The notes under the pieces: generated by a model
Databases searched by the model: none
Seen by the model: the letters and a program-made list of their open reading frames with translations, nothing else
What the model was told of the DNA's origin: nothing
Origin: Octopus sinensis
Taxonomy: Eukaryota
NCBI RefSeq assembly: GCF_006345805.1
Contig: NC_042999.1
Coordinates: 4,898,001-4,962,000, forward strand
Direction of reading: 5' to 3'
DNA: 64,000 bases
Position numbers and translations under genes: made by a program
Shown: piece after piece, positions 2,015-63,006 of the stretch
How positions within the stretch are numbered: the stretch's first letter is position 1
How the letters are laid out: each line of letters starts with the position of its first letter

Positions 2015-2600
2015 TCAGCCACCTGGATTACTTCTCTCACCTATGGTCACCTAACAATGTAAAGTTAACAGCGGACCTTGAAGCAATCCAGTGAAGCTTC
2101 ACAAAGAAGATTGTCTCTTTGCAACAGCTCAGCTACTAGGAAAGGCTGAAACAGCTAAGACTCTACTCTTCGGAGCAAAGGTAGGAGAGGTATGCAGTAA
2201 TATACATCTGGAAGGAATTGTGCCAAATTTTGGTATTGAAAGCTACACCAATGCCAGAACAGGTTGACACTGCACGGTGCCAAAGATCCCAGCAATGCCA
2301 TCGCGCAAAGGACCAGTTACTGCAACAGCCTGGGTTTCAGGGACCCACAGCTTTTTAATATTCTCCCAAAGAGTCTGAGGAACCTGCACAAAGCAGATGT
2401 AGGCATTTTTAAATCAAAGCTGGACCTCTTCCTGTTGAGATTCACAGATGAACCTACCTCACGGCAAGAGGTGCAAATGAGGCTATCTACCTCAAACTCC
2501 ATTCTTCACCAAATGCCACATATTAGAGGAAGCTCTCAGTAATAACAGTGTAACAAAACGGTGGTGCTCCAGCATGGCCACAGCTCTGAGCTGAAACAAC
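2015..2600 (+). mobile_element. CR1-clade LINE 3' remnant (mirror at ~60590-61250)
   Basis: ORF2 C-terminal motifs (SLGFRDPQLFNILP, KLDLFL...DEP); the right copy additionally reads TFRTRNKETMMVLWRTFVISHLDY. Confidence 0.75.
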
Positions 2601-3739
2601 AAAGAAAAAATTATATTTAGGATCTCTTTAGTTTCACTCACACCTGTAAATCCATTTTTTAGGCAGAATGGTATACATATAAGATTCCAATACCTTGTAA
2701 GTTCCAATAGTGCTTAAAATTGGTCATTCCAAGTATAAGAGTTTGTATACAGTGTTATTGAATTGAGGGTTTTATTTAAATAAAACCCTCAATTCAATAA
2801 CATTGTGTACAAACTCTATACTTGGAATGATCGATTTTTTTTTTAACTAAACAGTTTGAAACTTTGTATACTGGTGTAATTTCTCATGCTGAACACGGTT
2901 TACTTTCAACATTTTTGACAAAATTTCATATTTTAGAAGTTGTCATATTTGGGTAATTTTAACCAATCAACGACATGTATTCAGCTGAAGAATACTATTG
3001 CAAACAGCAGTAGTTATCAAAGAACAACACCTTGCAGGTCATCTCTACTAAATGTCACCACCTGTTTCCTGCCTGTGTTGCATATCACAACCTTTGTTTT
3101 TTTGCGATCGCCTCTTTGTACATTTGCCTGTTAATTTTGCGATTATTTTCACTATCTGTTGCATTTTATTTTTGTTTACTGCCTGTGTTGCATACTACAC
3201 GCTTTGTTTGCTTTTCAATCGCCTCTTTGTACATTTGCATTTTCACCACACATAGAAAGAGGCAATCATCATCATCATCATCATCATCGTTTAACGTCCG
3301 CTTTCCATGCTAGCATGGGTTGGACGAAATCAAAAAGCAAAAAAAAAAGGCCTGTAATATGCAACACAGACAATAAACAAGAATAAAATAGAACAGAGTT
3401 GGTGACATTTAGTAGAGATGACTCAGAAGTTGTTCTTTGATTACTGTCACAAACAGCAGAGGTTTTCTTCAGCTGAATACATGTTGTTGATTGGCTAAAA
3501 TAACCCAAATAAGACAACTTTAACACGAAATAACTTCTACAATATGAAATTTTGTCAAGAATGTTGAAAGCAAACCATGTTCAGTGTGAGAAATCAAACC
3601 AGAGTACAAAGTTTCAAACTCTTCAGTTAAAATAATATTTAATCTGTGAGATTTTAATCTGAAGAGATCCTATATTTGTAGTATATTTTATATATATATA
3701 GGTAAACATACACATCATATCCACATACAAAGATAAATA

Positions 3740-4600
3740 CGAGGTCTGATCAATAAGTATCCAGACTGTTGCCATGGAAACAAAGCTAAAGCACACAGAG
3801 TGGATCCGCTTGGCAAAGATTGACCTTGCACTCTGTTGTGCATGCGCACACTAAGTTTTAATGTTCTAGCTCATTTCTTCTGTTTACAGCAGTGCTTTGA
3901 AGGAAGGTGTGTAGCGTTTGATCGTTGCATTGACCATGACAGAGAAAGTTGTCATGGCGATACGTGCTCAGAGGTCTGTACAAAGTTGCACACAAGTGTA
4001 CGAGTGGTTTGGACATTTCCAAGAAGGCCGAAAAAATGTCAATATTGATGAACATTCTGGGAGACCCACAACCAGCAGAACAGAGAAAAACATCACAGAT
4101 GTGCATGCAGTTATGAAGGGAAATTGTTGAATCACCATCCATGAGTCATCAGAGGATGTGCAGATTAGTGACGGTTCAGTTCAGTTCATTATCAATCAAG
4201 ATTTAGGTATGAGACATGTGTTTGCCAAGTTTGTGCCAAAACTGCTTTCAGCTGACCAAAAAGACACCCGGGTTTCAGTTGGACAAGATCTCGATTGTGT
4301 CAAGAATGAGGAAAACTTTTTGAAAACTTTGCGTGGGACTCTGAGCAGATATTGTCAAGCTTTTGTCAGAATTTGATGCAGATTCTCTGCTCAACTTTCT
4401 GTCATGGTCAATTCAATGATCCCACGCTATACACCTTCCTTCCAAGCACTGCTGTAAACAGCAGAAGTGAGCTAGAATGTTAAAAGTTAGTGCACATGCA
4501 CAGCAGAGTTGAAGGTCAATCTGTGCCAAGCGGCTTTAATCTGCGTTGCTATAGCTTCGTTACTACGGCAACAGTCTGAATACTTGTTGATCTGACCATG
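3740..4600 (+). mobile_element. Defective mariner element with long inverted termini (mirror at ~58605-59466)
   Basis: TA|CGAGGTCTGATCAATAAGTATCCAGACTGTTGCC TIR; transposase remnants VYEWF..F.EGR....DEHSGRPTTS and AKFVPKLL. Confidence 0.85.
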
Positions 4601-5356
4601 AATATACACCACGTGTGTATCTATTCTATTTATAAATGTTCTAAAATCTTCACAGCCTTGGTTTTTTATCTCATTCTGAAAAAAACAATTTTTATATACA
4701 CACATGCTGATATATGACCTACGTTGGACCCCTTATTCGCACAAGGACCGAACCTGGAGCTTAACTATGGTCTGTCCATAGCCCTTACTCAGCATTACCT
4801 GACTCCTTTGGGTCTTATTGACACCATTACCTCTCTCTCTGTATATTACAGTATTGACTTATAAACCTTTAATATATTTGGTAGTATACTATGGTTGCAA
4901 AACAAAATACTGTGTCCCTACCAGCAGTAACACACACACACATATATGTAAAGGTGCATGGGTGCCTAGTGGTTAGAGTGTTGTGCTCACAATCACAAGA
5001 TCATGGTTTCAGTTCCTAGACCAGGCGGTGTGTTGTGTTCACTTCGTCTCACTCTGCTCTGTGATTTCTTCAACACCTGGTGCGTGGTACACCGTGCACC
5101 TGTTCAGGCTAAATTGATTTGATGTAGGGAGTGAGCTGATGGACAGCTCATACATTTGACCACAATAAACAAACCCTTTTGTGCAAGTCATTCAGCACAC
5201 AGCTGAACACTACACTCATAAGTCATCTTCAACAGGAAAATCCATTATATATATATATATAAATATATATACAAATTGAGATAGGGGTTGTAAAGTATGA
5301 GATTGGGATCTGGTAATTGATATTTGATTTGGATGTATTTCTCCATTTTCTTATTT

Positions 5357-5405
<49 letters not shown>

Positions 5406-5991
5406 TTAGAGATAAAACCACTATTAGGCAAATCAAACAGTGAAAAACATAAACCAATACACAGAAATAAAAATAATTAATATAATATTCAAAATTTAAA
5501 TTATTTAAAGTTAAAGTTAAAATTTTAAAAATTATTTAAATTATTAATTTATACTTATAAATTTATATATATATATTATTTTTTTTTAATAAATATAATT
5601 ATCAAAAAGTATTAAAAAGTTTAATATAAGATAAAGAGTATATATATATATGTAAAGCATAATGTTATATGTATGTATATTATTGTAATTATCAGTTTAG
5701 TAAATAAATAAATAAATTGACATAATATAATGTCTAAAAGTTGATGAACCACCTATTGATCCCCTCCATTTTCTTATTGCTTTATAAATTAATGGTAAAA
5801 TATCTCTTCACATTCACCCATTTAGTACACTCGGTAATGTAATTGCAATGCAATAAAAAACACTTGTGTATTAATAACTGGGTATTCTACCAGCAGTATA
5901 TTGGATAGATATTATCCCTTAGTGGGTTGGATTCACAGCCTCTAACTTTCTTGGAGTTATATATATATATATATATAAATAAAAATAAATA

Positions 5992-6411
5992 CAGGGTTGG
6001 CCAAAAGTAACCAGACAGTAAATCAAAATTCCATGAATACTTAACCCTGTTGAGATTCTCTGTGTTTCTTTTAATTAATTATAAATATAACAAATAATTT
6101 AGTTATCATTAAGCTAGTGCTAGGAACATAAATTGTGACTAAGGTTTTCTGGAAGATTTCAATTCAGAACTTATGAAAACAAGACATCTGTACTACAGAG
6201 CCAGAGCCGGTTTCAGCCAGGTTGGTATCAGAAGAGTTAATATTCAATCTTGTTTATTCGTTCCAATTATGAATGTTGTGAGTTAAAATCACTGTTTTTT
6301 CTTTTCCTCCAACATTTGTCTATTTCTTAGTCTCATATAAAATATTTTTTTGTTTTAATCTTAGAATTAAATGCTTTTAATTTACTGGCAGGTAACTTTT
6401 GGCCAACCCTG
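5992..6411. mobile_element. Tc1/mariner-type MITE containing a nested TTAA-flanked MITE (6045-6236); mirror at 55962-56921
   Basis: TA|CAGGGTTGGCCAAAAGT(A/T)ACC TIRs at both ends. Confidence 0.8.
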
Positions 6412-8356
6412 TATGTATGTATGTATGTGTGTGTGTGTGTGTTTGTGTGTTTATTGCTAGTAGGGACACAGTGTTTTGTTTTGAAACTATTGGATGCTAG
6501 CAAATACATTAAGGGTTTATAAGTCAATATCATGTCCTGCTTTTGTGTTAGCAGTGCATTGTCTTCATTTTTAATTTTCTCTCTCCAGATTTTGTATACA
6601 ACCCAGAGCCAGCATTGAAAGTTACAACATTTTATATATGAATACATCTATGTAAACAATGTGATCAAAGACAGAAAAATGGGTTAAGGGCAGACATGCA
6701 TGTTTCAAGAGTTATTGTTCCCTCCTCAGCACCAAATGCAACCCATGAATACATTGCTAAAATACCCACCAAGTTTAGCAGTATAACACTATTGGATAGA
6801 ACAATTTACATATCAAACACTGAAGAAGGAGCAATAACTTCTGAAATGTGCATATACACCTAATACCTATTTTTCTAACTTCAATCACATTGCTCACATA
6901 GATGTATTTGTATACAAAACATCACAACTTTCAGTTCTGGCTCTAAATTCAATCAAAAATCTGTAACCTTTTAAATACACACACACACATATAATATAAT
7001 ATGTGACAAATATTCGGTAGCCAAGATAAAACTCTGAGTTTCGGATGCTGAGGTAGAAATCCACACCACCATCTCTTCAGTTATCCGGCCATCGGAAAAA
7101 CGCTATGAAAAAAGACCGTTTTACATACACACACACATTTTAGTGAAGAAATAACCTAAAAGATGGTGGTTTTAAGTTGTGTTTATTGAAGAGCTTCCTG
7201 TAAGTATGGTTGACTGGAAAATGTCTATCTATCAGTGCTAGGAAATATTTGCCTATATTGAAGGTCACCTCGGGTGAGTAGGGAGGTGTGAACCAGATGA
7301 TCTTTGGGCTAGTGACAGGTGTATAGGTTATTTCTTCGCTAAAACCACTATCTTTTAGGTTATTTCTTTGCTAAATATATATATATATATGTAATATATA
7401 TGTATGTATATATTAATGACAGTGTGTCTAGTGACTAAAACAAGTAAAAAATGAATGATACAGTCCTTGGACACACTGGATCCTGTCAAACTGTCTAACC
7501 CATGCCAGCATGGAATACAGACGTTAAATGATGATTCATTTGCTCTATGTGAAGACATATTTTCAAAAAGTAACTCAGTCATTTTATATCTTTCCCTTGT
7601 TTCAGTCATTACAACTGTGGCCATGCTGGGGCAACCACCTTAAAGAATTTTAGTTAAGTGAATTGACCCTGGTACCTATTTTTTAAAAACTTGGTATTTA
7701 TTCTATCAGTCTCTTTTGCCGAACTGTTAAGTTCTGGGATGCGTAAACACCCCAATACCAGTTGTCATGCAGGGGTGGGGGACAAACAGACACGCACGCA
7801 CACATGATAAGCCTAGTACTTATTCTATGAACCTTTTTTCTGAATCACTAAGTTATGGGGATATAAACAAACCAACACTGGTTATCAAGTAGTGAGTGGA
7901 GGACAGACAGACACAAACACATAACTATATATATATGTGTGTACGTACCAGATATATTGTGTTTGTGTGTGTTTTTGTCGCCACTACCAATTGACAACTG
8001 ATGTTGGTGTGTTTATGTCCCTGTAACTTAGTGGTTCAGCAAAAGAAAACAATAGAATAAGTACTAGGCTCTAAAACAAAATAAGTGGTGGGTCCAATTC
8101 ATTTGACTGGAAAATTCTTCATGGCCAGACTTGGCTGAAACAAGTAAAAGATAAAAGATCTCACTGGGCTATTATTAAAAGAAAGTGAAATTGCTGAAAG
8201 AAATGCTATGAGTATTAACATAACATCTGAAATTTCCATGAAAATGTTATTTTTACTGAGTGCTGGAAAGATTAAATGGATAGCAAGTGATACTGAGATT
8301 CAATTTATTTCAGAAATTAAGTTATTTCATTTGTGTCAACAAACATTTGCCAGTCG

Positions 8357-8418
<62 letters not shown>

Positions 8419-8824
8419 GTTCAAGTAAATGTCTCTCTTAAAATTAATAAATGATGTAATGAGTGAAGTGAATAGTGACTTCGAATGAAGTTACCCAATA
8501 ATTTAGAAAGGGATGAAATATGAATCAATTTAGGAAATAATTTTTCTTTGAAATCCTGTCATCCTAAATTAACAAGTTCATTCGTTAAGGTGAACTGCTT
8601 AATTACATAAAAATTCTCAGAGGATACCAACTTAAAAATTCCAATTTATTAAGCCTACTTCATGTTTAATTAGAAAGAAAATTTAAATATCTATTTAATT
8701 AGATAAAAAATCTGCTAAAAATCAATACTTTGATTTATTTTAAATCATTGTCTCTGACATTCTGTCAAATATTCACTAGATTTTTAAATACTTTTATAAA
8801 CATTGAAAATAAATGTTTATGGTA

Positions 8825-9008
8825 CGGAGGCGCAGGAGCGGCTGTGTGGTAAGTGGCTTACTTACCAACCACATGGTTCCAGGTTCAGTCCCACTGCGTG
8901 GCACCTTGGACAAGTGTCTTTTACTATAGCCTTGGGCCGACCAAAGCCTTGTGAGTGGATTTGGTAGACGGAAACTGAAAGAAGCCCACTATATATATAT
9001 ATATATAT

Positions 9009-9062
<54 letters not shown>

Positions 9063-9255
9063 TGTCTCCCCACCAACATCGCTTGACAACCAATGCTGGT
9101 GTGTTTACATCCCTGTCACTTCACGGTTCGGCAAGAGAGACCAATAGAATAAGTACTGGGCTTAGAAAGAATAAGTCCTGGGGTCGATTCGCTCGACTAA
9201 AGGTGGTGCTCCAGCATGGCCACAGTCAAATGACTGAAACAAATAAGAGAATAAA
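8825..9255 (+). mobile_element. tRNA-derived SINE, family B, near full length
   Basis: Head, central (TA)n and CCAGCATGGCCACAGTCAAATGACTGAAAC tail. Confidence 0.8.
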
Positions 9256-9983
9256 AGAAAGGTACAAATCTTGATTTCTAATAAAATTCCTAGTATATTT
9301 TTCTATCCAGCTTTAAAAATCTGGTTTTGTTTGTTGGTTTTTGTTAAAAAAAAGTTGTTATTGTTTCCTGTTGTCTTTTTGGAAAGAGATAAAAAAATAA
9401 ATAACTAATTTATGAATCGAGTGTAGAGCTTGAACATAGAAAAATAAATGCCTGATTTGTGAATCAATTAGGGGTCTTGGTGAACAGAAATATCGAAACG
9501 GTGGGTACCAAAAGCAGTGAAACAACACTTGTATTGGTGTTTGCATTGTAAGCTGTTTATATATTTTTAAAGTTTCCCTTCCAGGGACATCACAGCTGGT
9601 GAACAACTGTAATTGTAAATTCCATTACAATTGGTGTGGTTTCTGCAATGAATTAGCAAGAATTATGAGACACGCCTCCAAAATATTAATATCTAAAATT
9701 TGAGACGGTTTTAACAAATTTCACTTTGATTGTTTTATTTTGGGTCATTTTTCAAATTGCTGCCTTTTTTTTTTTAAAGTTTTTTACACAAAATAAACCC
9801 CCATCTTCCATGTGCCAATCAATTATTTTTGTCTTTTTCTGTGCTGTAATAATAATAATAATAATCATTAACTTTGAAGAAGCTTAAAAAATACATATTT
9901 ACATAAGAATACAACCAGGGAATGCTTTGCATATAAAATAAGCCATTGTGAAGATAAGTTTTTTTTTTTTTTCTCAATAAAAC

Positions 9984-10342
9984 TTAAGAAGTTGATCGAG
10001 CCTCTTCCACACTAACGGGGCTCCGAGTCCTACTCATAGATTGATTGTTAGAGGTTCCGTCTAAAATTGCAGGATGCATTGTAAAATGTCCTGATGAATT
10101 TGCAGATGAAGACGATGAAGATGCGCAGAGAGTTTTTACATGGACAGAGTTCATGTTGTCATGGTCTGTCAGCTGGCTGCTGTCCGGACTAGGAGATGCA
10201 GAATGCATATGCAAGCTATTATTGTATGCTAGAAGGCCTTGCCGTTTGGATTTACTAATCTCCAATAAATGGTCAAAGCACTGAGACTTCCTCTTTAGTA
10301 ATTCCTTCTTGTGTTCCGCTTCTGCAACTCGACGTCGAAGTT
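9984..10342 (-). CDS. GMEB: Last coding exon, left copy
   Basis: ttcttag|AACTTCG; LRRRVAEAEHKKELLKRKSQCFDHLLEISK...ARSTS*. Confidence 0.85.
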
Positions 10343-12280
10343 CTAAGAAAGAAAAGATAAAGAAAATTCATATAAGCAGAGTAATTCTAATATCCTCTCT
10401 GTAAGAAAATTTATTTAATCACCTGGAACAGTGGTTCACAACCTATTTAATATCCAGGCTAGATCCAAAACCTAGAATGTAAAAAACACCATTTGAGCAT
10501 GGCCATTGCCAGTACCGCCAGACTAGCCCTCGTGCTGGCGGCATGTAAAAGCACCCACTACACTCTCGGAGTGGTTGGCGTTAGGAAGGGCATCTAGCTG
10601 TAGAAACTCTGCCAGATCAGATTGGAGCCTGGTGCAGCCATCTGGTTTGCCAGTCCTCGGTCAAATCGTCCAACCCATGCCAGCATGGCCGGTTTAAACA
10701 TTAAAGGGTTAAAGACAAACACATTTTTCTTTTTAATTACCACAATAACAGCTTGAATCAACCCCCCCCCCCCAACGAAAAACCTAAACTTACAAATTTC
10801 AAACCAATACCAACAAAGAATGTAGACACTTTACCTTCCATTTCTTTATCAAGTTTCTCTTTCTGTCGTTCCATGTCAGTTTTATGAGCTGCCAACCAGT
10901 GTTTCAGTTTTGATGTCAAACCCAGTTCACTGGCAACTCTTGAAACCTTCCGTACCTCTGCAATTCACAATAGAGCATATGGATTAACACTGGTTTCAAA
11001 TTTTGGCACAAGGTCAGCAATTTGGGGGAAGGAGATAAGTCGATTACATCGATCCCAGGCGAGCTGGCAGAAACGTTAGCACGCCGGGCGAGATGCGTAG
11101 CCGTATTTCGTCTGCTGTTACGTTCTGAATTCAAATTCCGCCCAGGTCGACTTTGCCGTTCATCCTTTCGGGGTCGATAAATTAAGTACCAGTTGCGTAC
11201 TGGGGTCGATATAATCGACTTAATCCGTTTGTCTGTCCTTGTTTGTTCCTTCTATGTTTAGCCCCTTGTGGGTAGTAAAGAAATAGATTACATCGACCCC
11301 AGTACACAACTGGTACTTACTTTATCGACCGCAAAAGGATGAAAGGCAAAGTCAGCTTTAGCCGAATTTGAACTCAGAACGTCAAGATGGACGAAATACT
11401 GTGAAGTATTTTGACACAAGGCCAGCAATTTCAGAGCAGTGGAAAGTGGATTACACCGACCCTGGTAGCATTTGAACTCAGAATCTACAAACATGAAATG
11501 CAGTTAAGCATTTTGCCCAGCATACTAACGGTCTTGCAATGATATGGAATGATATTACAATGTTATTATTATTCTTCAAATCAATTTTCAGTAATAAAAC
11601 AGACTTGAAGGTTTTGATACCAGAAAAGAAATTCTTTCTCAATTTGTTTTATGTCTTTTTTTGTCTCTTCTTTTTCCAGGCTTTGACATCTTACATTAAC
11701 TGAGGCAGTGCTCTGCAACCAGACAGCCTTCCTGTCATCAAGCCTTACCCGGTTTTCAAGTAGGAGTTCTTTTATTTCCCATCCAAGTCCTACGACTGGC
11801 ACCCTGCAGTTGCCAGTGCCGCTGGACTGACTCCTGTGCAGGTGGCAAGTAAAGAAACACCGTTTCGACCCTGTGCTTGAGGAGACCTATTGAGTCAAGT
11901 ACATCAACATAAAAAAATCAATGGAAATTGTAGTTGTGATCCCTGTACCGGTGGCACGTAAACAGCACCCTATTACACTCATGGAGTATTTAAGGGTTAT
12001 GCAAGGGTAAAAATGTTGAGAAACACTGGTTTAGACTGATCTGACATTGATTTATAACAAAGTTAAACTTACCTTCAAGTGGACATTGGTTTCGAATGAG
12101 ATTATGTTTTAGATTGTCCAAGGTGGTCTTGATTTCCCGAAATATTTCATCAGCAAGTCCGAGCTCAATTATTCCTTTCCAAAACAGTTGACTTTCTACA
12201 AGAGACAAAAAACAAGAACTTCATTTCTTCAAGGAGTAACAGTAAACAATTATACACTCAATGGAAAGTTTGATTCCTAA

Positions 12281-12343
<63 letters not shown>

Positions 12344-18104: not shown

Positions 18105-18135
<31 letters not shown>

Positions 18136-40862: not shown

Positions 40863-40893
<31 letters not shown>

Positions 40894-49800: not shown

Positions 49801-50327
49801 AGGGGGGGGGGGTGATTCAAGCTGTTATTGTGGTAATTAAAAAGAAAAATTTGTTTGTCTTTAAATAAAACCTCTTTAACAACCACTTTGAGCGTCTTTT
49901 TGAGCTCCATGTGTCTAACACATGTAGGCATGTCTACAAAGTCAGTAAACAGCTCAGCTCCCACGACTTTTGAAAACATTTTTTCACACTCAGAGTTGCT
50001 GAAGAATGAAACAAACTACCTGCTTCAGTTGTTAGTTGCTGAGACATTGCATCCTTTATTATGGATGTAAAACAAATGGACGGGGACACACACACACACA
50101 CATACATAATATATTTAGATCAAATTTACAGAAAACAAAAGACAAAGACAGGTAAAGGAACAATAAGCAGGTATATTAGTTTAATGCTCAGAACGAATGG
50201 AAAAGTTGTTGACATTTCGAGCCTATGCTCTTTGACAGAAAGGATTAAGAGGAGAAAAAATATGTAGGGATTAACGGTTCAACATGATGAAATGGCTGGA
50301 AGAAAGGGCCTGAAAAAAAATATACAT

Positions 50328-50360
<33 letters not shown>

Positions 50361-52094: not shown

Positions 52095-53022
52095 GTTTTA
52101 TTGAGAAAAAAAAAAAAACTTATCTTCACAATGGCTTATTTTATATGCAAAGCATTCCCTGGTTGTATTCTTATGTAAATATGTATTTTTTAAGCTTCTT
52201 CAAAGTTAATGATTATTATTATTATTATTATTACAGCACAGAAAAAGACAAAAATAATTGATTGGCACATGGAAAATGGGGGTTTATTTTGTGTAAAAAA
52301 CTTTAAAAAAAAAAGGCAGCAATTTGAAAAATGACCCAAAATAAAACAATCAAAGTGAAATTTGTTAAAACCGTCTCTAATTTTAGATATTAATATTTTG
52401 GAGGCGTGTCTCATAGTTCTTGCTAATTCATTGCAGAAACCACACCAATTGTAATGGAATTTACAATTACAGTTGTTCACCAGCTGTGATGTCCCTGGAA
52501 GGGAACTTTAAAAATATATAAACAGCTTACAATGCAAACACCAATACAAGTGTTGTTTCACTGCTTTTGGTACCCACCGTTTCGATATTTCTGTTCACCA
52601 AGACCCCTAATTGATCCACAAATCAGGCATTTATTTTTCTATGTTCAAGCTCTACACTCGATTCATAAATTAGTTATTTATTTTTTTATCTCTTTCCAAA
52701 AAGACAACAGGAAACAATAACAACTTTTTTTTAACAAAAACCAACAAACAAAACCAGATTTTTAAAGCTGGATAGAAAAATATACTAGGAATTTTATTAG
52801 AAATCAAGATTTGTACCTTTCTTTTATTCTTTTATTTGTTTCAGTCATTTGACTGTGGCCATGCTGAAGCACCACCTTTAGTCGAGCGAATCGACCCCAG
52901 GACTTATTCTTTCTAAGCCCAGTACTTATTCTATTGGTCTCTCTTGCCGAACCGTGAAGTGACGGGGACGTAAACACACCAGCATTGGTTGTCAAGCGAT
53001 GTTGGTGGGAGACAAACATATA

Positions 53023-53126
53023 TATATATTATATATATATATATATTATATATATATGTATATATATATATATATATGTATTATATATATATATATGTAT
53101 ATATATGTATATATATATATATATAT

Positions 53127-53218
<92 letters not shown>

Positions 53219-53302
53219 ATATATATGTATATATATATATATATATATATGTGTATATATATATATAATATATATATGTGTATATATATATATATATATG
53301 TG

Positions 53303-53342
<40 letters not shown>

Positions 53343-53347
53343 TATAG

Positions 53348-53381
<34 letters not shown>

Positions 53382-53400
53382 GTGGGCTTCTTTCAGTTTC
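53023..53400. repeat. Imperfect (TA)n microsatellite, ~380 bp, inside a SINE
   Basis: Directly visible; the mirror tract at ~8990-9058 is only ~70 bp. Confidence 0.95.
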
Positions 53401-53953
53401 CGTCTACCAAATCCACTCACAAGGCTTTGGTCGGCCCAAGGCTATAGTAAAAGACACTTGTCCAAGGTGCCACGCAGTGGGACTGAACCTGGAACCATGT
53501 GGTTGGTAAGTAAGCCACTTACCACACAGCCGCTCCTGCGCCTCCGTACCATAAACATTTATTTTCAATGTTTATAAAAGTATTTAAAAATCTAGTGAAT
53601 ATTTGACAGAATGTCAGAGACAATGATTTAAAATAAATCAAAGTATTGATTTTTAGCAGATTTTTTATCTATTTAAATAGATATTTAAATTTTCTTTCTA
53701 ATTAAACATGAAGTAGGCTTAATAAATTGGAATTTTTAAGTTGGTATCCTCTGAGAATTTTTATGTAATTAAGCAGTTCACCTTAACGAATGAACTTGTT
53801 AATTTAGGATGACAGGATTTCAAAGAAAAATTATTTCCTAAATTGATTCATATTTCATCCCTTTCTAAATTATTGGGTAACTTCATTCGAAGTCACTATT
53901 CACTTCACTCATTACATCATTTATTAATTTTAAGAGAGACATTTACTTGAACT

Positions 53954-53992
<39 letters not shown>

Positions 53993-56287
53993 CGACTGGC
54001 AAATGTTTGTTGACACAAATGAAATAACTTAATTTCTGAAATAAATTGAATCTCAGTATCACTTGCTATCCATTTAATCTTTCCAGCACTCAGTAAAAAT
54101 AACATTTTCATGGAAATTTCAGATGTTATGTTAATACTCATAGCATTTCTTTCAGCAATTTCACTTTCTTTTAATAATAGCCCAGTGAGATCTTTTATCT
54201 TTTACTTGTTTCAGTCAAGTCTGGCCATGAAGAATTTTCCAGTCAAATGAATTGGACCCACCACTTATTTTGTTTTAGAGCCTAGTACTTATTCTATTGT
54301 TCTCTTTTGCTGAACCACTAAGTTACAGGGACATAAACACACCAACATCAGTTGTCAATTGGTAGTGGCGACAAAAACACACACAAACACAATATATCTG
54401 GTACGTACACACATATATATATAGTTATGTGTTTGTGTCTGTCTGTCCTCCACTCACTACTTGATAACCAGTGTTGGTTTGTTTATATCCCCATAACTTA
54501 GTGATTCAGAAAAAAGGTTCATAGAATAAGTACTAGGCTTATCATGTGTGCGTGCGTGTCTGTTTGTCCCCCACCCCTGCATGACAACTGGTATTGGGGT
54601 GTTTACGCATCCCAGAACTTAACAGTTCGGCAAAAGAGACTGATAGAATAAATACCAAGTTTTTAAAAAATAGGTACCAGGGTCAATTCACTTAACTAAA
54701 ATTCTTTAAGGTGGTTGCCCCAGCATGGCCACAGTTGTAATGACTGAAACAAGGGAAAGATATAAAATGACTGAGTTACTTTTTGAAAATATGTCTTCAC
54801 ATAGAGCAAATGAATCATCATTTAACGTCTGTATTCCATGCTGGCATGGGTTAGACAGTTTGACAGGATCCAGTGTGTCCAAGGACTGTATCATTCATTT
54901 TTTACTTGTTTTAGTCACTAGACACACTGTCATTAATATATACATACATATATATATATATATATATATTTAGCAAAGAAATAACCTAAAAGATAGTGGT
55001 TTTAGCAAAGAAATAACCTATACACCTGTCACTAGCCCAAAGATCATCTGGTTCACACCTCCCTACTCACCCGAGGTGACCTTCAATATAGGCAAATATT
55101 TCTTAGCACTGATAGATAGACATTTTCCAGTCAACCATACTTACAGGAAGCTCTTCAGTAAACACAACTTTAAACCACCATCTTTTAGGTTATTTCTTCA
55201 CTAAAACCTGTATGCGGGTATGTATGTAAAACGGTCTTTTTCCATAGCTTTTTGCCGATGGCCGGATAACTGAAGAGATGGTGGTGTGGATTTCCACCTC
55301 AGCATCCGAAACTCAGAGTTTTATCTTGGCTACCGAATATTTGTCACATATTATATTATATGTGTGTGTGTGTGTGTGTACTTAAAAGTTTACAGATTTT
55401 TGATTGAATTTAGAGCCAGAACTGAAAGTTATGATGTTTTGTATACAAATACATCTATGTGAGCAATGTGATTGAAGTTAGAAAAATAGGTATTGGGTGT
55501 AGATGCACATTTCAGAAGTTATTGCTCCTTCTTCAGTGTTTAATATATAAATTGTTCTATCCAATAGTGTTATACCGCTAAACTTGGTGGGTATTTTAGC
55601 AATGTATTCATGGATAGTTAATGGGTTGCATGTGGTGCTGACGAGGGAACAATAACTCTTGAAACATGCATGTCTGCCCTTAACCCATTTTTCTGTCTTT
55701 GATCACATTGTTTACATAGATGTCTTCATATATAAAATGTTGTAACTTTCAATGCTGGCTCTGGGTTGTATACAAAATCTGGAGAGAGAAAATTAAAAAT
55801 GAAAACAATGCACTGCTAACACAAAAGCAGGACATAATATTGACTTATAAACCCTTAATGTATTTGCTAGCATCCAATAGTTGCAAAACAAAACACTGTG
55901 TCCTTACTAGCAATAAACACACAAACACACACACACACACATATATATATACATATATATACAGGGTTGGCCAAAAGTTACCTGACAGTAAACTAAAAGC
56001 ATTTAATTCCAAGATTAAAACAAAAAAAATATTTTATATGAGACTAAGAAATAGACAAATGTTGGAGGAAAAGAAAAAACAGTGATTTTAACTCACAGCA
56101 TTCATAATTGGAATGAATAAATAAGATTGAATATTAACTCTTCTGATACCAACCTGGCTGAAACTGGCTCTGGCTCTGTAGTACAGATGTCTTGTTTTCA
56201 TAAGTTCTGAATTAAAATCTTCCACCAAACCTTAGTCACAATTTATGTTCCTAGCACTAGCTGAATGATAACTAAATTATTTGTTAT

Positions 56288-56819
56288 CATCATCATCGTT
56301 TAGCATCCGCTTTCCATGCTAGCATGGGTTGGATGGTTCAACTGGGGTCTGGGAAACCAGAAGGCTGCACCAGGCCCAGTTTGATCTGGCAATGTTTCTA
56401 CGGCTGGATGCCCTTCCTAACACCAACCACTTCGTGAGTGTAGTGGGTGCTTTTTACGTGCCACCGGCGCAGGTGCCAGACGAGTCTGGCAAACGGCCAT
56501 GATCGGATGGTGCTTTTTATGTGCCACCAGCACGGGGGCCAGGCGAGGCTGGCAATGGCCACGAACGGATGGTGCTTTTTACGTGCCACCGGCACAAGGA
56601 CAGTCAGGGCGGCGCTGGCAACGGCCACGAACGGATGGTGCTTTTTACGTGCCAGTCGGGGCGGCGCTGGCAATGGCCACGTTCGGATGGTTCTCTTACG
56701 TGCCACCGGCACTGGTAACTCAGCTGCAATTTCCATTGATCGATTTCGATTCTGATTCTCACTTGCCTCAACAGGTCTTCACAAGTAGAGTTTTGTGTCC
56801 CAAGAAGGGAAGGTATGCA
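56288..56819 (-). mobile_element. RTE 3'-end retro-insertion, right arm only
   Basis: 7-bp TSD TTGTTAT (56281-56287 and 56820-56826); the left arm has the single empty site (~6088). Confidence 0.88.
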
Positions 56820-57528
56820 TTGTTATATTTATAATTAATTAAAAGAAACACAGAGAATCTCAACAGGGTTAAGTATTCATGGAATTTTGATTTACTGTCT
56901 GGTTACTTTTGGCCAACCCTGTATTTATTTTTATTTATATATATATATATATATAACTCCAAGAAAGTTAGAGGCTGTGAATCCAACCCACTAAGGGATA
57001 ATATCTATCCAATATACTGCTGGTAGAATACCCAGTTATTAATACACAAGTGTTTTTTATTGCATTGCAATTACATTACCGAGTGTACTAAATGGGTGAA
57101 GATAAAGAGATATTTTACCATTAATTTATAAAGCAATAAGAAAATGGAGGGGATCAATAGGTGGTTCATCAACTTTTAGACATTATATTATGTCAATTTA
57201 TTTATTTATTTACTAAACTGATAATTACAATAATATACATACATATAACATTATGCTTTACATATATATATATACTCTTTATCTTATATTAAACTTTTTA
57301 ATACTTTTTGATAATTATATTTATTAAAAAAAAATAAAATTAAAAAAATAATAATAATAAAAATAATATATATATATATATATAAGTATAAATCAATAAT
57401 TTAAATAATTTTTAAAACTTTAACTTTAAATAATTTAAATTTTGAACATTATATTAATTATTTTTATTTCTGTGTATTGGTTTATGTTTTTCACTGTTTG
57501 ATTTGCCTAATAGTGGTTTTATCTCTAA

Positions 57529-57915
57529 CTAGCAGTATCGCCTGGCGTTGCTCGGGTTTGTAAGGGAAATAACTATAAAGCACTTTTAGAGAGTTATAGC
57601 CAAAAAATAGCAAAAAAAATTGGGAAAAAAATTATGGTAAATTTTTTTTTGATAGTTAAAAAGGCCGAGTTGCGTCCCCTACACCATCTGCGGTTTGCGT
57701 TTCTGATTGTCGACCCCATGTCGAATTTATCGATCTTTTTCTGAACTGGGGGAACTTTTCAAAATTTTCGCTGCGTTAGTTTTGAATTATGACATTGGGC
57801 TATGTGTGTGTCAAGTTTCATCAGAATCGGTTGAAAGCCGTGGTCAGAGTGAGGGTACAAACAAACAGACACACAGAAACACGCACAGACAAACTGCCGT
57901 TTATATAGAGAGAGA
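57529..57915 (-). mobile_element. Non-autonomous Helitron, right arm only
   Basis: Minus strand A|TCTCTC...GCTAG|T, i.e. TC/CTAG ends in an AT target with no TSD; absent at left ~5410. Confidence 0.75.
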
Positions 57916-60900
57916 TTTAAAATATATATATATCTATATATATATATAATGGATTTTCCTGTTGAAGATGACTTATGAGTGTAGTGTTCAGCTGTGTGCT
58001 GAATGACCTGCACCAAAGGGTTTGTTTATTGTGGTCAAATGTATGAGCTGTCCATCAGCTCACTCCCTACATCAAATCAATTTAGCCTGAACAGGTGCAT
58101 GGTGTACCACGCACCAGGTGTTGAAGTGATCACAGAGCAGAGTGAGACGAAGTGAACACAACCCACCGCCTGGTCTAGGAACTGAAACCATGATCTTGAG
58201 ATTGTGAGCACAACACTCTAACCACTAGGCACCCATGCACCTTTACATATATGTGTGTGTGTGTGTGTGTTACTGCTGGTAGGGACACAGTATTTTGTTT
58301 TGCAACCATAATATACAACCAAATATATTAAAGGTTTATCAGTCAATACTGTAATTTACAGAGAGAGAGAGAGAGAGGTAATGGTGTCAGTAAGACCCAA
58401 AGGGGTCAGGTAATGCTGAGTAAGGGCTATGGACAGACCATAGTTAGGCTCCAGGTTTGGTCATTGTGCGAATAAGGAGTCCAACGTAGGTCATATATCA
58501 GCATGTGTGTATATAAAAATCGTTTTTTTCAGAATGAGATAAAAAACCAAGGCTGTGAAGATTTTAGAACATTTATAAATAGGATAGATACACACATATA
58601 TATTCATGGTCAGATCAATAAGTATTCAGACTGTTGCCATAGTAACGAAGCTAAAGCACCGCAGAATGAAGCCGTTTGGCACAGATTGACCTTCGACTCT
58701 GCTGGTGCATGTGCACTAACTTTTAACATTCTAGCTCACTTCTGCTGTTTACAGCAGTGCTTGGAAGGAAGGTGTGTAGCGTGGGATCATTGAATTGACC
58801 ATGACAGAAAGTTGAGCAGAGAATCTGCATCAAATTCTGACAAAAGCTTGACAATATCTGCTCAGAGGTCTGTGCAAAGTTTTCAAAAAGTTTTCCTCAT
58901 TCTTGACACAATCGAGATCTTGTCCAACTGAAACCCGAGTGTCTTTTTGGTCAGCTGAAAGCAGTTTTGGCACAAACTTTGCAAACACATGTCTCATACC
59001 TAAATCTTGATTGATAATGAACTGAACTGAACCGTCACTAATCTGCACATCCTCTGATGACTCATGGATGGTGATTCAACAATTTCCCCTCACAACTGCA
59101 TTCACATCTGTGATGTTTTTCTCTGTTCTGCTGGTTGTGGGTCTCCCAGAATGTTCATCAATATTGACATTTTTTCGGCCTTCTTGGAAATGTCCAAACC
59201 ACTCGTACACTTGTGTGCAACTTTGTACAGACCTCTGAGCACGTATCGCCATGACAACTTTCTCTGTCATGGTCAATGCAACGATCAAACGCTACACACC
59301 TTCCTTCAAAGCACTGCTGTAAACAGAAGAAATGAGCTAGAACATTAAAACTTAGTGTGCGCATGCACAACAGAGTGCAAGGTCAATCTTTGCCAAGCAG
59401 ATCCACTCTGTGTGCTTTAGCTTTGTTTCCATGGCAACAGTCTGGATACTTATTGATCAGACCTCGTATTTATCTTTGTATGTGGATATGATGTGTATGT
59501 TTACCTATATATATATAAAATATACTACAAATATAGGATCTCTTCAGATTAAAATCTCACAGATTAAAAATTTTTTTAACTAAACAGTTTTAAGCTTTGT
59601 ATGCTGGTTTGATTTCTCACACTGAACATGGTTTGCTTTCAACATTTGTGACAAAATTTCACATTGTAGAAGTTATTTCGTGTTAAAGTTGTCTTATTTG
59701 GGTTATTTTAACCAATCAACAACTGAAGAAAACCTCTGCTGTTTGTGACTGTAATCAAAGAACAACAACTTTTGAGTCGTCTCTACTAAATGTCACCAAC
59801 TCTGTTCTATTTTATTCTTGTTTATTGTTTGTGTTGCATATTACAGGCCTTTTTTTTTTTTGCTTTTTGATTTTGTCCAACCCATGGAAAGCGGACGTTA
59901 AACAATGATGATGATGATTGCCTCTTTCTATGTGTGGTGAAAATGTAAATGTACAAAGAGGCGATTGAAAAGCAAACAAAACGTGTAGTATGCAACACAG
60001 GCAGTAAACAAAAATAAAATGCAACAGATGGTGAAAATAATCGCAAAATTAACTGGCAAATGTACAAGGAGGCGATCGCAAAAAAACACAAAGGGTGTGA
60101 TATGCAACACAGGCAGGAAACAAGTGGTGACATTTAGTAGAGATGACCTGCAAGGTGTTGTTCTTTGATTACTATTGCAAACAGCAGTAGTTTTCTTCAG
60201 CTGAATACATGTCGTTGATTGGTTAAAATTACCCAAATATGACAACTTCTAAAATATGAAATTTTGTCAAAAATGTTGAAAGTAAACCGTGTTCAGCATG
60301 AGAAATTACACCAGTATACAAAGTTTCAAACCGTTTAGTTAAAAAAAAAAAAAATCGATCACTCCAAGTATAGAGTTTGTACACAGTGTTATTGAATTGA
60401 GGATTTTATTTAAATAAAACCCTCAATTCAATAACATTGTATACAAACTCTTATACTTGGAATGACCAATTTTAAATACTATTGGAACTTACAAGGTATT
60501 GGAATCTTATATGTATACCATTCTGCCTAAAAAATGGATTTACAGGTGTGAGTGAAACTAAAGAGATCCTAAATATAATTTTTTCTTTGTTGTTTCAGCT
60601 CAGAGCTGTGGCCATGCTGGAGCACCACCGTTTTATTACACTGTTATTACTGAGAGCTTTCTCTAATATTTGGCATTTGGTGAAGAATGGAGTTTGATGT
60701 AGATAGCCTCATTTGCACCTCTTGCCGTGAGGTAGGTTCATCTGGGACTCTCGACAGGAAGAGGTCCAGCTTTGATTTTAAAATGCCTACATCTGCTTTG
60801 TGCAGGTTCCTCAGACTCTTTGGGAGAATATTAAAAAGCTGTGGGTCCCTGAAACCCAGGCTGTTGCAGTAACTGGTCCTGAAGCGCGATGGCATTGCTG

Positions 60901-63006
60901 GGATCTTTGGCACCGTGCAGTGTCAACCTGTTCTGGCATTGGTGTAACTTTCAATACCAAAATTTGGCACAAATCCTTCCAGATGTATATTACTGCATAC
61001 CTCTCCTACCTTTGCTCCGAAGAGTAGAGTCTTAGCTGTTTCAGCCTTTCCTAGTAGCTGAGCTGTTGCAAAGAGACAATCTTTTTTGTGAAGCTTCACT
61101 GGATTGCTTCAAGGTCCGCTGTTAACTTTACATTGTTAGGTGACCATAGGTGGGAGAAATAATCCAGGTGGCTGATGACGAATGTCCTCCAGAGGACCAT
61201 CATGGTTTCCTTATTTCTGGTTCTGAATGTAATATAAGATAAGATAATATAACCAATTTTCACAAATTTAACCAGATAAAGCCAATAATTTGTTTTGACT
61301 TATATACATTATTTGATTTATAAACAATTCATATCTATGTATACATGTTTCTTCAGACCCTTGGTTCCAAAAGACAGACGAAATTCCATGTAAAAGGACT
61401 GCTAAATTGTAAAATAATACTGATTCAAAATACCTATGTTTAGGGGCGTGAGTGTTAACAATTCTAAACATAAATACAACAAAAAAACAAAATTCAAATG
61501 GATAAATTAATTCTTTCATTCATTTACTTGTTTCAGTCATTTGACTGTGACCATGCTGGAGCACCGCCTTTAGTCAAGCAAATCAACCCCAGAGCTTATT
61601 CTTTGTAAGCTTAGTACTTATTCTATTGGTCTCTTTTGCCAAATTGCTAAGTTACGGGGACATAAACATACCATCGGTTGTTAAGCAATGTTGGGGAGAC
61701 AAACACAGACACAAACATATACACACTCACACATATATATACACATATACAACTGGCTTCTTCCAGATTCCATCTACCAAATCCACTCACAAGGCTTTGG
61801 TAGACCCGATGCCATAGTAGAAGACACCTGCCCGAGGTGCCATACAGTGGGGCTATGACCATGTGGTTGGTAAGCAAGCTACTTACCACACAGCCACTCC
61901 TGCATCTAACTGAGTAAAGAAAATTTATAACAGTCAAAAATGTTATAGATCTCCAATAAATGTATTTAAATCGAAAGGCATCACAGCCATTTTAATGATA
62001 TATAATAATAATATGTAAACATATTAGCAAATAAAGTATCAATGTTTTACTTAGTTTTATTGATGGATTAATCGTGTAGATCCATCATCATCATTGTTTA
62101 ATGTCCGCTTTCCATGCTAGCATGAGTTGGATGAATTGACTGAGGACTGGCGAACCAGATGGCTGCACCTGGCTCCTATCTGATCTGGTAGATGGATGCC
62201 CTTCCTAACGCCAACCACTCCGAGAATGTAGTGGGTGCTTTTACATGCCACTGGCACAAGGGCCAGTCAGGTGGTACTGGCAATGGCCATGCTCAAATGG
62301 TGTTTTTTTATGTGCCACCTGCACAGGAGCCAGTCCAGCGGCACATTATCTAGGATGCAGTGTTTTTTTTTTTATTCATTTATTTTCCAAATTTGAATGT
62401 GATGCAGTCACAGCCCTGTTGTTAAGAAGTTTGGTCCACAATCACAAAGTTCTGGGTTTAGTCTCATCAGTTGGTACATTGGACAAATACTTTTTTCAGG
62501 AAACCTTGGGTCAGTCCCTTGTGAGTCTACTTCGGTGGGTGGAAACTGTGTAGAGCCAATCAAATAATGTATTTTAATTACTATATTACAATGGGTGTAG
62601 TTAAGGCAGTGAGCTAGCAGAAATGTTAGCACACCGGACGAAATGCGTAACCGTATTTCGTCTGCCGTTATGTTGTGAGTTCAAATTCCGCCAAGGTCGA
62701 CTTTGCCTTTCATCCTTTCGGGGTTGATTAAATAAGTACCAGTTACGCACTGGGGTCAATATAATCGACTTTATCCGTTTGTCTGTCCTTGTTTGTCCTC
62801 TCTGTGTTTAACCCCTTGTGGGTAGTAAAGAAATAGGTATTTCATCTGCCTTTACGTTCTGAGTTCAAATTCCGCCGAGGTTGACTTTGCCTTTCATCCT
62901 TTCGGGGTTGATTAAATAAGTACCAGTTACGCACTGGGGTCGATGTAATCGACTTAATCCGTTTGTCCTCTCTGGGTTTAACCCCTTGTGGGTAGTAAAA
63001 GAAATG

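Follow-up and report, generated by a model that had tools for sequence, protein, structure and literature searches.

To our knowledge, gene-bearing palindromes with arm-to-arm gene conversion have been studied almost entirely on the sex chromosomes of mammals, birds and plants. In human Y palindromes, a crossover between the arms can also invert the centre. The palindromes of the primate and mouse X (PMC8327919; 10.1101/800185; PMC8981503) resemble the octopus locus described here in having arms of tens of kilobases around a short unique spacer, in carrying protein-coding genes, in being conserved as the same palindrome between species, in keeping both paralogs under purifying selection, and in showing conversion as within-species arm similarity that exceeds between-species orthologous similarity. 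The octopus arms, however, are 89-98% identical outside a few tracts rather than >99% identical, and the chromosome is very probably an autosome; moreover, octopus conversion comes in patches and misses the 3' end of the coding sequence, so that the two paralogs no longer encode the same protein. Human Y palindromes P1-P8 (PMC8600007; PMC3403216) share palindrome geometry and intrachromosomal conversion with the octopus locus, and their centre inversion would have a flipped, unplaced octopus contig as its counterpart. In contrast to them, the octopus locus lies outside any non-recombining, sex-limited region, has far smaller and much less homogenised arms, and holds a single gene pair rather than an ampliconic family.

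We analysed 64,000 nucleotides of Octopus sinensis (CM016861.1:4898001-4962000; hereafter, the window). Considering its structure, the conservation of that structure, the signal of selection and the mosaic of conversion, the locus as a whole is very probably a genuine, conserved inverted duplication of a GMEB gene, with both copies functional, patchy conversion between them and possibly a flip of the centre. This kind of element is known, while the architecture appears to be undescribed; the locus overturns no current ideas but provides a useful, well-resolved case. It is a clean, small and very probably autosomal example in a mollusc, and because conservation in two species is joined by an outgroup with one copy and by a haplotype that may be flipped, this one locus follows such a structure through all its stages: origin, long homogenisation, escape of a coding segment with divergence of the proteins, and possible inversion of the centre.

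Comparison of the window with its own reverse complement (BLAST) yielded a colinear inverted chain running from 2015-5271/61175-57923 through to 24985-28787/36399-32578, and self-comparison found 135 inverted pairs. The arms, spacer and arm-specific insertions are as follows.

2015..28787, left arm, 26,773 bp (inverted BLAST chain and repeat self-comparison)
28788..32577, unique spacer, 3,790 bp (inverted BLAST chain; 94.7-98.6% identical to its O. vulgaris ortholog)
32578..61175, right arm, 28,598 bp (inverted BLAST chain and repeat self-comparison)
19969..21028, left-only insertion of 1,060 bp in intron 2, O. sinensis only
23668..24985, left-only insertion, a retroelement with a 258-aa ORF and a weak PHD-finger match
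46956..48338, right-only insertion (inverted BLAST chain)
48934..49415, right-arm-specific insertion common to the O. sinensis and O. vulgaris right arms
49865..51669, right-only insertion, against 291 bp on the left
56288..56820, right-only insertion (inverted BLAST chain)

An earlier note on this DNA had placed a palindrome at 2015-61175, with arms of ~27 and ~29 kb around a 3.8-kb spacer, coordinates that equal those of the BLAST chain exactly; as in large palindromes of the sex-chromosome type, the arms are longer than about 8-10 kb (26.8 and 28.6 kb) and flank a unique spacer (3.79 kb). The arms differ in length because of arm-specific insertions, which are restricted to introns, as that note had also held. 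Identity per block ranges from 89 to 98.3%, plus a single block of 2,421 bp at 100%; overall the arms are about 96-98% identical, diverging by 2.1% and by five indels of kilobase scale. Chance cannot account for 27 kb of inverted similarity at 95-98% identity. The insertion at 23668-24985 is common to the O. vulgaris left arm and missing from both right arms and from O. bimaculoides. Extension of the palindrome past the window was considered, but the flanks showed no inverted homology in the window or in ~1.7 kb more of the O. vulgaris right flank. Among the repeats, ARAGORN found no tRNA-like heads in the ~230-bp SINE-like elements, and several transposon-like ORFs gave no Pfam match.

Each arm carries a gene with five exons and one cassette exon that encodes a SAND-domain product, with the following coordinates.

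9984..21267, minus strand, coding span of the left GMEB paralog; product exactly XP_029633455.1 (393 aa, GMEB1-like)
Left exons, minus strand: E2 21267-21056, E3 18457-18093, cassette 15392-15321, E4 12195-12073, E5 10957-10835, E6 10342-9984
38795..52094, plus strand, coding span of the right GMEB paralog; product exactly XP_029634390.1 (390 aa, GMEB1)
Right exons, plus strand: E2 38795-39006, E3 40541-40905, cassette 43602-43673, E4 46794-46916, E5 49601-49723, E6 51745-52094

Since the left gene is on the minus strand and the right gene on the plus strand, the two lie head to head. The earlier claim of two intact, divergently oriented GMEB-like genes therefore stands: all AG/GT splice sites are present and the frames open in both copies, the products equal RefSeq proteins, and the sole coding indel between the copies is an in-frame 9 bp. 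In the left gene every intron is phase 1, and the ATG of E2 lies immediately 3' of the acceptor; one fetched locus (L008) is an exact match to the window starting at position 28795. Both genes are already in RefSeq with two isoforms each, and O. sinensis and O. vulgaris each have annotated proteins of the left (L) and the right (R) type. The paralogous proteins differ at 19 residues (~94% identity), with the cassette exon differing at 6 of its 24. An ORF at 14259-14726 was rejected as an exon (no Pfam match, no cross-species tblastx match, in no annotated protein); the true exon in its interval is the 72-nt cassette.

Judged from their sequences, both products belong to the GMEB family of SAND-domain transcription factors and are closer to GMEB than to SP100/SP140. 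The Pfam SAND domain (PF01342) was matched at E=4.7e-23 on the exon and at 8.7e-24 (left) and 1.2e-23 (right) on the full-length proteins, for which it was the sole match in local Pfam, and the KDWK motif is present in both copies. In a PDB search the top solved structure was the GMEB1 SAND domain 1oqj (2e-23), whereas SP140/SP100 reached only 1e-8 to 6e-8, and the alignment to 1oqj continues through the zinc-binding tail 'SGQLDF..H....C...C'. Annotated GMEB orthologs occur across molluscs and vertebrates, and GMEB-annotated proteins of octopods, bivalves, tunicates and fishes gave 71-100% query coverage; the 'FWKGI' exon is retained at other molluscan loci, and a coiled-coil-like region is present at the C-terminus. 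A search with the SAND exon alone gave only four fragments, whose loci confirmed that the exon is conserved. The SAND domain with KDWK and the zinc-binding tail, the conserved 'FWKGI...' region, the C-terminal coiled-coil-like region and the existence of two paralogs whose differences lie chiefly beyond the SAND domain all recall vertebrate GMEB1 and GMEB2, which form heteromers. The octopus pair differs from these in being an independent, lineage-specific duplication of adjacent genes that are still ~94% identical, and thereby documents such a duplication of GMEB in the Octopus vulgaris complex.

The same palindrome is present in the separately assembled O. vulgaris chromosome OX597816.1 (arms 2856-31873 and 36820-67586, arm identity 89-97.6%), with a 4.9-kb orthologous spacer, the same left boundary and the same arm-specific insertions as in O. 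sinensis, and with both gene types, whose CDSs reproduce CAI9718987 and CAI9718985 exactly. Sites compared across two arms and two species supported orthology in 151 cases, concerted evolution in 109 and the crossed topology, which we took as the noise level, in 16, and these sites were spatially clustered. Relative to O. bimaculoides, the two arms agree with each other but differ from that species at 884 sites, with 59 and 50 lineage-specific sites. These patterns indicate arm-to-arm conversion that is patchy, its extremes being the following tracts.

16298..18718, left copy of the 100%-identical tract, 2,421 bp, containing exon 3 (concerted versus crossed sites 13:0; 0.0% divergence)
40280..42700, right copy of the 100%-identical tract
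9849..12566, left copy of a tract escaping conversion, with exons 4-6; right partner about 46451-52231

Within the identical tract, a deletion at 17313/41685 is common to the two O. sinensis arms only, which points to a recent gene-conversion tract specific to O. sinensis. Conversion here may have run from left to right, although an anomaly of the O. vulgaris right arm, whose stretch at 17.9-15.6 kb lies 15-19% away from all other sequences, weakens confidence in that direction. The cross-species comparison thus shows concerted evolution between the arms and an absence of conversion from exons 4-6: in the escaped tract L-R divergence is 3-7%, orthology outnumbers concerted evolution 63:2, and exons 4-6 have been out of conversion since before speciation. 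Given this escape and the fixed amino-acid changes in exons 4-6 (10 in the left lineage, 6 in the right), the paralogs differ in their C-terminal half. The arms thus still exchange sequence: sporadic conversion between them homogenises patches of the palindrome and leaves the 3' part of the gene to diverge.

Three other accounts of the locus as a whole must be weighed against a genuine, conserved duplication. Two haplotypes of one locus could have been falsely joined in inverted orientation, as a haplotig fold-back or a chimeric-read hairpin; the palindrome is indeed almost central in the window, its outer ends just 2-2.8 kb from the window ends, and the same assembly has an unplaced contig with part of the locus in another configuration, so the region is evidently hard to assemble. 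Such an artefact, which the earlier note had named as its refuter, is effectively refuted by the recurrence of arms, spacer and boundary in a separate assembly of another species, by the sharing of L and R types between the species (the 151 orthology sites, the arm-specific insertions and the annotation in both of two proteins with 19 differences), and by a 3.8-kb unique spacer in a window that contains zero N. A true haplotig, furthermore, diverges from the chromosome by 0.18-0.48%, about ten times below the L-R divergence of 2.1% with its five kilobase-scale indels. It is also improbable that one copy is non-functional or decaying and seems intact merely through recent conversion by a good copy. 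That account could appeal to exon 3, which is identical between the arms through conversion, to the cassette differences, and to acceleration of the L lineage (in the exon 5-6 tract, 29 derived sites versus 8; 10 nonsynonymous versus 5 synonymous fixed changes). Yet the unconverted exons 4-6 keep their frames and splice sites in both lineages and both species, two RefSeq isoforms are annotated per copy, and between O. sinensis and O. vulgaris synonymous changes number 15 in the L orthologs and 9.5 in the R orthologs, against 0 and 4.5 nonsynonymous ones. As nonsynonymous sites make up ~78% of the total, 0 of 15 is very unlikely under neutrality; dN/dS between L and R is 0.22. These counts show purifying selection on both copies, and are a stronger test of the constraint that had previously been read from intactness. 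Both paralogs are probably functional, with expression taken solely from database annotation.

Still less probable is a classic ampliconic, Z-linked palindrome that frequent conversion keeps >99% identical throughout and that protects a gene expressed in the gonad. Its architecture is indeed seen here in the large arms, the short unique spacer, the paired genes and the conversion between arms; the nematode GMEB relative spe-44 is, moreover, a regulator of spermatogenesis, and the Spe-44 family (PF25892) is found on the orthologs, in precomputed annotation only. However, arm identity does not exceed 99% along the arms of either species, with only 2.4 kb of the O. sinensis arms at 100%, and the coding 3' halves have been unconverted since before speciation. 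As the Z chromosome, PMC10925132 gives chr17 for O. bimaculoides and the former chr20 for O. sinensis, and 10.1101/2024.12.09.627507 gives chr16 for O. vulgaris, whereas the locus lies on CM046603.1, CM016861.1 and OX597816.1, the second or third accession of each assembly and chromosomes of 168-182 Mb. The locus is thus probably autosomal, the chromosome number being deduced from accession order and size. The earlier note had pointed out that large palindromes maintained with gene conversion are best known from sex chromosomes; conversion is borne out here by the 109 concerted sites, but arms well below 99%, patchiness, the escape of exons 4-6 and a probable autosome depart from the classic sex-chromosome form.

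A genuine duplication, then, must also be dated and given an origin. The sharing of both gene types indicates that it is older than the split between O. sinensis and O. vulgaris, and it would date from around the O. bimaculoides split or later. The loci of O. bimaculoides and Argonauta hians each yielded one GMEB gene, and the former is without a large inverted repeat, in an assembly (GCA_001194135.2) that has N gaps there and may have collapsed a palindrome. In the escaped tract the L-R divergence of 6.6% is close to the divergence from O. bimaculoides (5.9-9.0%), so the duplication could reach back as far as that split. Upstream of its single gene, the O. bimaculoides locus has sequence colinear with the right part of the spacer (31221-32577); the right arm and ~0.9 kb of the right flank are colinear with the rest of that locus, whose order is spacer-right, arm, 61131-62085, ..., left flank (1990-1). 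The left flank of the window is hence ancestral downstream sequence, inverted and on the other side. A second, smaller inverted pair has one member in the spacer and the other beyond the right arm.

29103..29769, X, a small segment of the spacer, inverted copy of X' at 94.8%
63097..63755, X', in the right flank, 1.9 kb past the right arm

X and X' are also paired in O. vulgaris, and together with the large arms they form a reciprocal pair of inverted duplications; in O. bimaculoides, the arm is single-copy and X would fall just upstream of the fetched sequence.

These arrangements suggest that the palindrome originated in a single inversion that left an inverted duplication at each breakpoint: with staggered breaks, such an inversion would duplicate both ends of the inverted block and so produce a palindrome with two GMEB copies. 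For the origin only, a competing account has fold-back or template switching simply insert an inverted duplicate upstream of the parent gene, with unrelated rearrangements coming later; we consider this quite possible, if somewhat the weaker of the two. Fold-back priming usually yields just this, an inverted duplication with a short unique spacer; the left arm is without the ~0.9-1.6 kb that staggered breaks predict beside the left flank; and the right flank is mostly repeats, so that X/X' might be a low-copy transposon. Conversely, the inverted ancestral downstream sequence in the left flank, and the ancestral upstream and immediate downstream neighbours retained by the right arm, speak for an inversion. 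X and X', of which none of the fetched loci contains a further copy, stand in reciprocal position to the arms in both species and have diverged to a similar degree (94.8% versus 95.3% for the outer arms). The resulting a-B-D'-C'-B'-D-e pattern is that described for staggered-break inversions in Drosophila (PMC1885836), in which, as here, a block (X, spacer and right arm) is inverted against its flanks relative to an outgroup and each block end is duplicated, inverted, on the far side (arm/arm, X/X'). The octopus locus differs from the Drosophila cases in that its left copy is without one predicted segment. Because almost the whole inverted block, about 28 of 34 kb, is duplicated, an inversion of this kind would have the look of a palindrome instead of that of a long inversion whose duplicated ends are short.

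The centre of the palindrome carries mirrored features at both junctions of arm and spacer.

28201..29000, CpG-island-like putative promoter region at the left arm/spacer junction (CpG o/e 1.5-1.9; window median 0.43)
32401..33200, mirror CpG-island-like putative promoter region at the right arm/spacer junction
32865..32957, minus strand, putative upstream exon copy in the right arm, oriented for the left gene, donor ATG/GTAAGA kept
28412..28501, plus strand, mirror putative upstream exon copy in the left arm, oriented for the right gene, donor ATG/GTAAGA kept

The CpG islands may serve as promoters. The annotated O. vulgaris L-type transcript CAI9718986 begins in the opposite arm, and its first coding exon is homologous to 32865-32957, suggesting that first exons may lie across the spacer in O. 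sinensis as well. The N-terminal extension of CAI9718986 was rejected as conserved coding sequence: in O. sinensis it is interrupted by a stop and by a frameshift, and it is therefore read as a 5' exon only. It is possible, but unlikely, that the paralogs are jointly interlocked, with starts in opposite arms, spacer-crossing antisense transcripts, double-stranded RNA, coupling of the paralogs and a segregating flip of the centre. Were this so, primary transcripts would cross the spacer with an antisense overlap of ~5-6 kb, and each would carry both inner-arm ends, which form an inverted repeat of at least ~0.4 kb; the resulting long intra- and intermolecular double-stranded RNA could couple or cross-repress the paralogs, in animals whose RNA is heavily edited by ADAR, and the flip would be a segregating polymorphism that swaps promoters and exon 2 between paralogs.

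The unplaced contig VCDQ01000472.1 contains the centre of the palindrome in flipped configuration, and crossover between the arms may flip the centre. The flipped contig could also be an assembler path switch inside the near-identical tract. Together with the identical tract, this redundant contig confounds annotation, read mapping and variant calling at both LOC genes. Certain 'L-like' bases in the outer right part of the contig were considered as polymorphic conversion, but a check against the O. vulgaris arms identified all 8 as private mutations of the reference right arm.

The most fitting description of the locus is a palindromic segmental duplication, very probably autosomal, that stands partway between concerted evolution and paralog divergence. 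Repeat finding, which returned 135 inverted pairs in the window, and a BLAST comparison of the window with its reverse complement agree exactly with the ~59-kb inverted repeat proposed in an earlier note. The colinear inverted BLAST chain runs from 2015/61175 to 28787/32578 and delimits three features:

2015-28787, left arm, 26,773 bp
28788-32577, spacer between the BLAST-defined arms, 3,790 bp
32578-61175, right arm, 28,598 bp

The window contains no N bases. Arm blocks are 89-98.3% identical, with a single 2,421-bp block at 100% (16298-18718 / 40280-42700), and arm-specific insertions of 0.5-1.8 kb account for the unequal arm lengths. An AT-rich microsatellite just downstream of the gene (53018-53381; 183 dinucleotide copies; left counterpart ~8865-9104) is strongly enlarged in the right arm only, another arm-specific difference. 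The left flank carries a 26-bp minisatellite (1068-1630; 21.7 copies, 96% matches) that is kept in O. vulgaris (L004 48541-49049, part of the orthologous locus), and related 66-67-bp repeats with a GGTGCTTTTTACATG core lie within arm-specific insertions (23745-23883 and 56446-56654). A 258-aa ORF in a left-arm-specific insertion (24061-24837, minus strand), with a weak PHD-finger match below the Pfam cutoff (E=6.5e-05), looks like a retroelement fragment inserted after duplication and before the sinensis/vulgaris split. At least ten copies of a ~230-bp SINE-like element (mutual identity 85-92%) are present in the window, two of them in the spacer; ARAGORN found no tRNA-like head in these elements, which lie at:

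11058-11286, 16972-17192, 18945-19175, 21535-21731, 28856-29086, 31806-32036, 38316-38546, 39826-40050, 41806-42026 and 62611-62839

Each arm holds one GMEB-like gene with five coding exons and a 72-nt cassette exon. Exons were located with stop-to-stop ORFs, Pfam and tblastx against related mollusc loci, and the junctions were then read:

21267-21056, 18457-18093, 15392-15321 (cassette), 12195-12073, 10957-10835, 10342-9984, minus strand, left gene
38795-39006, 40541-40905, 43602-43673 (cassette), 46794-46916, 49601-49723, 51745-52094, plus strand, right gene

In both genes all introns are phase 1 and all junctions AG/GT, and the only coding indel between the 393-aa (left) and 390-aa (right) ORFs is an in-frame 9 bp, bearing out the earlier claim of two intact, oppositely oriented copies. 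A SAND domain is matched in Pfam (E=4.7e-23), and the closest solved structure is the GMEB1 SAND domain 1oqj (2e-23, versus ~1e-8 for SP100/SP140); this alignment takes in the zinc-binding tail, and the label "GMEB-like" is therefore correct. Full-length search and cluster listing identified the right product exactly as XP_029634390.1 ("GMEB1 isoform X2 [Octopus sinensis]") and the left as XP_029633455.1 ("GMEB1-like isoform X2"). The CM016861.1 segment 4926795-4960094 (GCA_006345805.1) matches the window without any difference from position 28795 onward, which places the window at CM016861.1:4898001-4962000. Annotation of both genes thus existed already, including a cassette-exon isoform of each, whereas the palindrome architecture seems undescribed, as no paper naming GMEB together with octopus was found in the literature searched. 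The 24-residue cassette (15321-15392, minus; 43602-43673, plus) differs between paralogs at 6/24 residues within an intron ~98% identical, and it also varies among octopods, making it a fast-evolving segment.

Five separate observations rule out an assembly artefact. The palindrome is also present in the separate O. vulgaris assembly (OX597816.1:8639067-8710154; L004+L005, overlap verified), with arms at 2856-31873 and 36820-67586, an orthologous spacer of 4.9 kb, and the same left boundary and left flank. Its R-type and L-type genes stand head to head, with CDSs matching CAI9718985 and CAI9718987 exactly. Arm-specific insertions recur in both species on the matching arm (patterns 10100 and 01010), and 151 sites among 18,492 well-aligned four-way columns pair left with left and right with right copies across species. 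The haplotig-like contig VCDQ01000472.1 shows scattered substitutions relative to the chromosome (0.18-0.48%), far less than the 2.1% divergence and kilobase indels between arms; together with the O. vulgaris assembly, this excludes the haplotig artefact named as a refuter in the earlier note. The O. bimaculoides locus, in an assembly containing N gaps, carries a single gene and lacks any large inverted repeat.

Divergence between the arms has been shaped by gene conversion. Besides the 151 orthology sites, the quartet scan yielded 109 concerted sites (O. sinensis arms alike and differing from alike O. vulgaris arms) and 16 crossed sites, the latter setting the noise level; the classes are clustered along the arms. 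In concerted windows (18245-16603, 9848-7544 and 26198-25020), arms diverge by 0.0-0.7% in O. sinensis versus 2-6% in O. vulgaris, and a deletion in the 100%-identical tract (17313/41685) occurs in both sinensis arms but not in vulgaris arms or bimaculoides. With bimaculoides added, 884 sites are shared by both arms and unlike bimaculoides, versus 59 left-derived and 50 right-derived; most of the arm was therefore kept homogenised over a long period. Conversion has spared the exon 5-6 window (11356-9849; orthology 49:0; 7.2% divergence): across the escaped tract the arms differ by 6.6%, the same order as their divergence from bimaculoides (5.9-9.0%), and the left lineage is accelerated (29 derived sites versus 8). 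At exon 3, the O. sinensis right protein has the derived L-type H and E where O. vulgaris R and bimaculoides have R and G, which suggests left-to-right conversion in O. sinensis. This direction is tentative because the O. vulgaris R-arm tract there (aligned to ~17881-15624) lies 15-19% from every other arm and O. bimaculoides, possibly through misalignment, an insertion or ectopic conversion from another site. In the exon 3 region of the O. vulgaris R arm (~21963-22391 of the joined locus), the exon also contains an internal duplication of 54 bp, which adds 18 residues ("NQSQNQDDPDVKPSV...").

Nei-Gojobori estimates, with pre-speciation changes polarised by O. bimaculoides, uphold the view that both copies are under constraint. 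The O. sinensis paralogs have dS 0.089, dN 0.020 and omega 0.22; left orthologs differ by 15 synonymous and 0 nonsynonymous changes, and right orthologs by 9.5 and 4.5. Changes fixed after duplication and before speciation number 5 synonymous and 10 nonsynonymous on the left lineage and 6 and 6 on the right. Both paralogs passed through an early period of amino-acid change, mostly in exons 4-6, followed by strong purifying selection. A truncated third copy of GMEB (exons 2-5, cassette isoform included) lies on another chromosome in both species (O. sinensis, 120 Mb, XP_036359978.1 and XP_029638206.1; O. vulgaris, 135 Mb, CAI9724117.1). It keeps ancestral residues at sites of left/right divergence, and its O. 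vulgaris annotation (624 aa) fuses it with a long array of C2H2 zinc fingers.

The sex-chromosome analogy drawn earlier holds in part. Primate and mouse X palindromes (PMC8327919; 10.1101/800185) are alike in geometry, conservation, conversion and constraint, but the octopus locus lacks two class-defining features, identity >99% and sex linkage. The cephalopod Z corresponds to chr17 of O. bimaculoides, to the former chr20 of O. sinensis (PMC10925132) and, for O. vulgaris, to chr16 of GCA_951406725.2 (10.1101/2024.12.09.627507). The locus lies on chromosomes of 168-182 Mb (CM046603.1, CM016861.1 and OX597816.1, respectively) that come second or third in the accession order of each assembly, and from this order and size is therefore very probably autosomal.

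The O. bimaculoides sequence runs colinear with the window along the right-hand spacer segment (31221-32577), through the right arm and, across the arm boundary, into the right flank (61131-62085); further downstream, its sequence corresponds to the window's left flank (1990-1), inverted. A small inverted pair, X/X', is reciprocal to the big arms:

29103-29769 / 63755-63097, spacer / right flank, 94.8% identical

This pair is common to O. vulgaris, and no further copies occur in any fetched locus. Staggered-break inversions are described as leaving this a-B-D'-C'-B'-D-e layout (PMC1885836); here nearly the whole inverted block was duplicated. We give a roughly even chance to such an inversion, with inverted duplications at both breakpoints, as the origin; its weak points are that a predicted 0.9-1.6 kb is missing from the left copy and that X was not located in the bimaculoides segment covered.

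The highest CpG enrichment of the 64 kb falls in mirror windows at the arm/spacer junctions (28201-29000 and 32401-33200; o/e 1.5-1.9, median 0.43). In the O. vulgaris L-type model CAI9718986, the first coding exon lies at 31488-31589 of the joined locus, within the innermost part of the opposite arm, versus 44581 for exon 2 of the L gene. Copies in the window keep the donor ATG/GTAAGA:

32957-32865, minus strand, first-exon copy, right arm
28412-28501, plus strand, first-exon copy, left arm

In bimaculoides, where the locus is single-copy, the corresponding sequence is found ~5 kb upstream of the gene, in antisense orientation. We infer an upstream-antisense exon of a putative bidirectional promoter, which the palindrome would have made available to the other copy as a first exon, a candidate one in O. 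sinensis.

The unplaced 68.5-kb contig VCDQ01000472.1 of the same O. sinensis assembly repeats part of the locus with its centre flipped, its 1741-36109 segment spanning window 31256-12622 (reversed) and 39031-62079. It comprises, in order, reversed spacer (28788-31256, 100% identical); L-type inner arm (diagnostic sites 103 L versus 4 R; both L-specific insertions); a 700-bp R-type patch around exon 2 with 11 old R-diagnostic sites; an L-specific 1,060-bp insertion; and R-type outer arm with all R-specific insertions. This pattern would result if the arms had crossed over in intron 2 and so inverted the centre, with a conversion patch alongside, or if the assembler had switched path in the near-identical tract. 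The two readings, a real inversion haplotype and a path switch, seem about equally probable, although allele-like substitutions on both sides favor a real second haplotype. RefSeq places another copy of the right gene (XP_029656950.1/51.1) on this contig, whose redundancy will cause multi-mapping.
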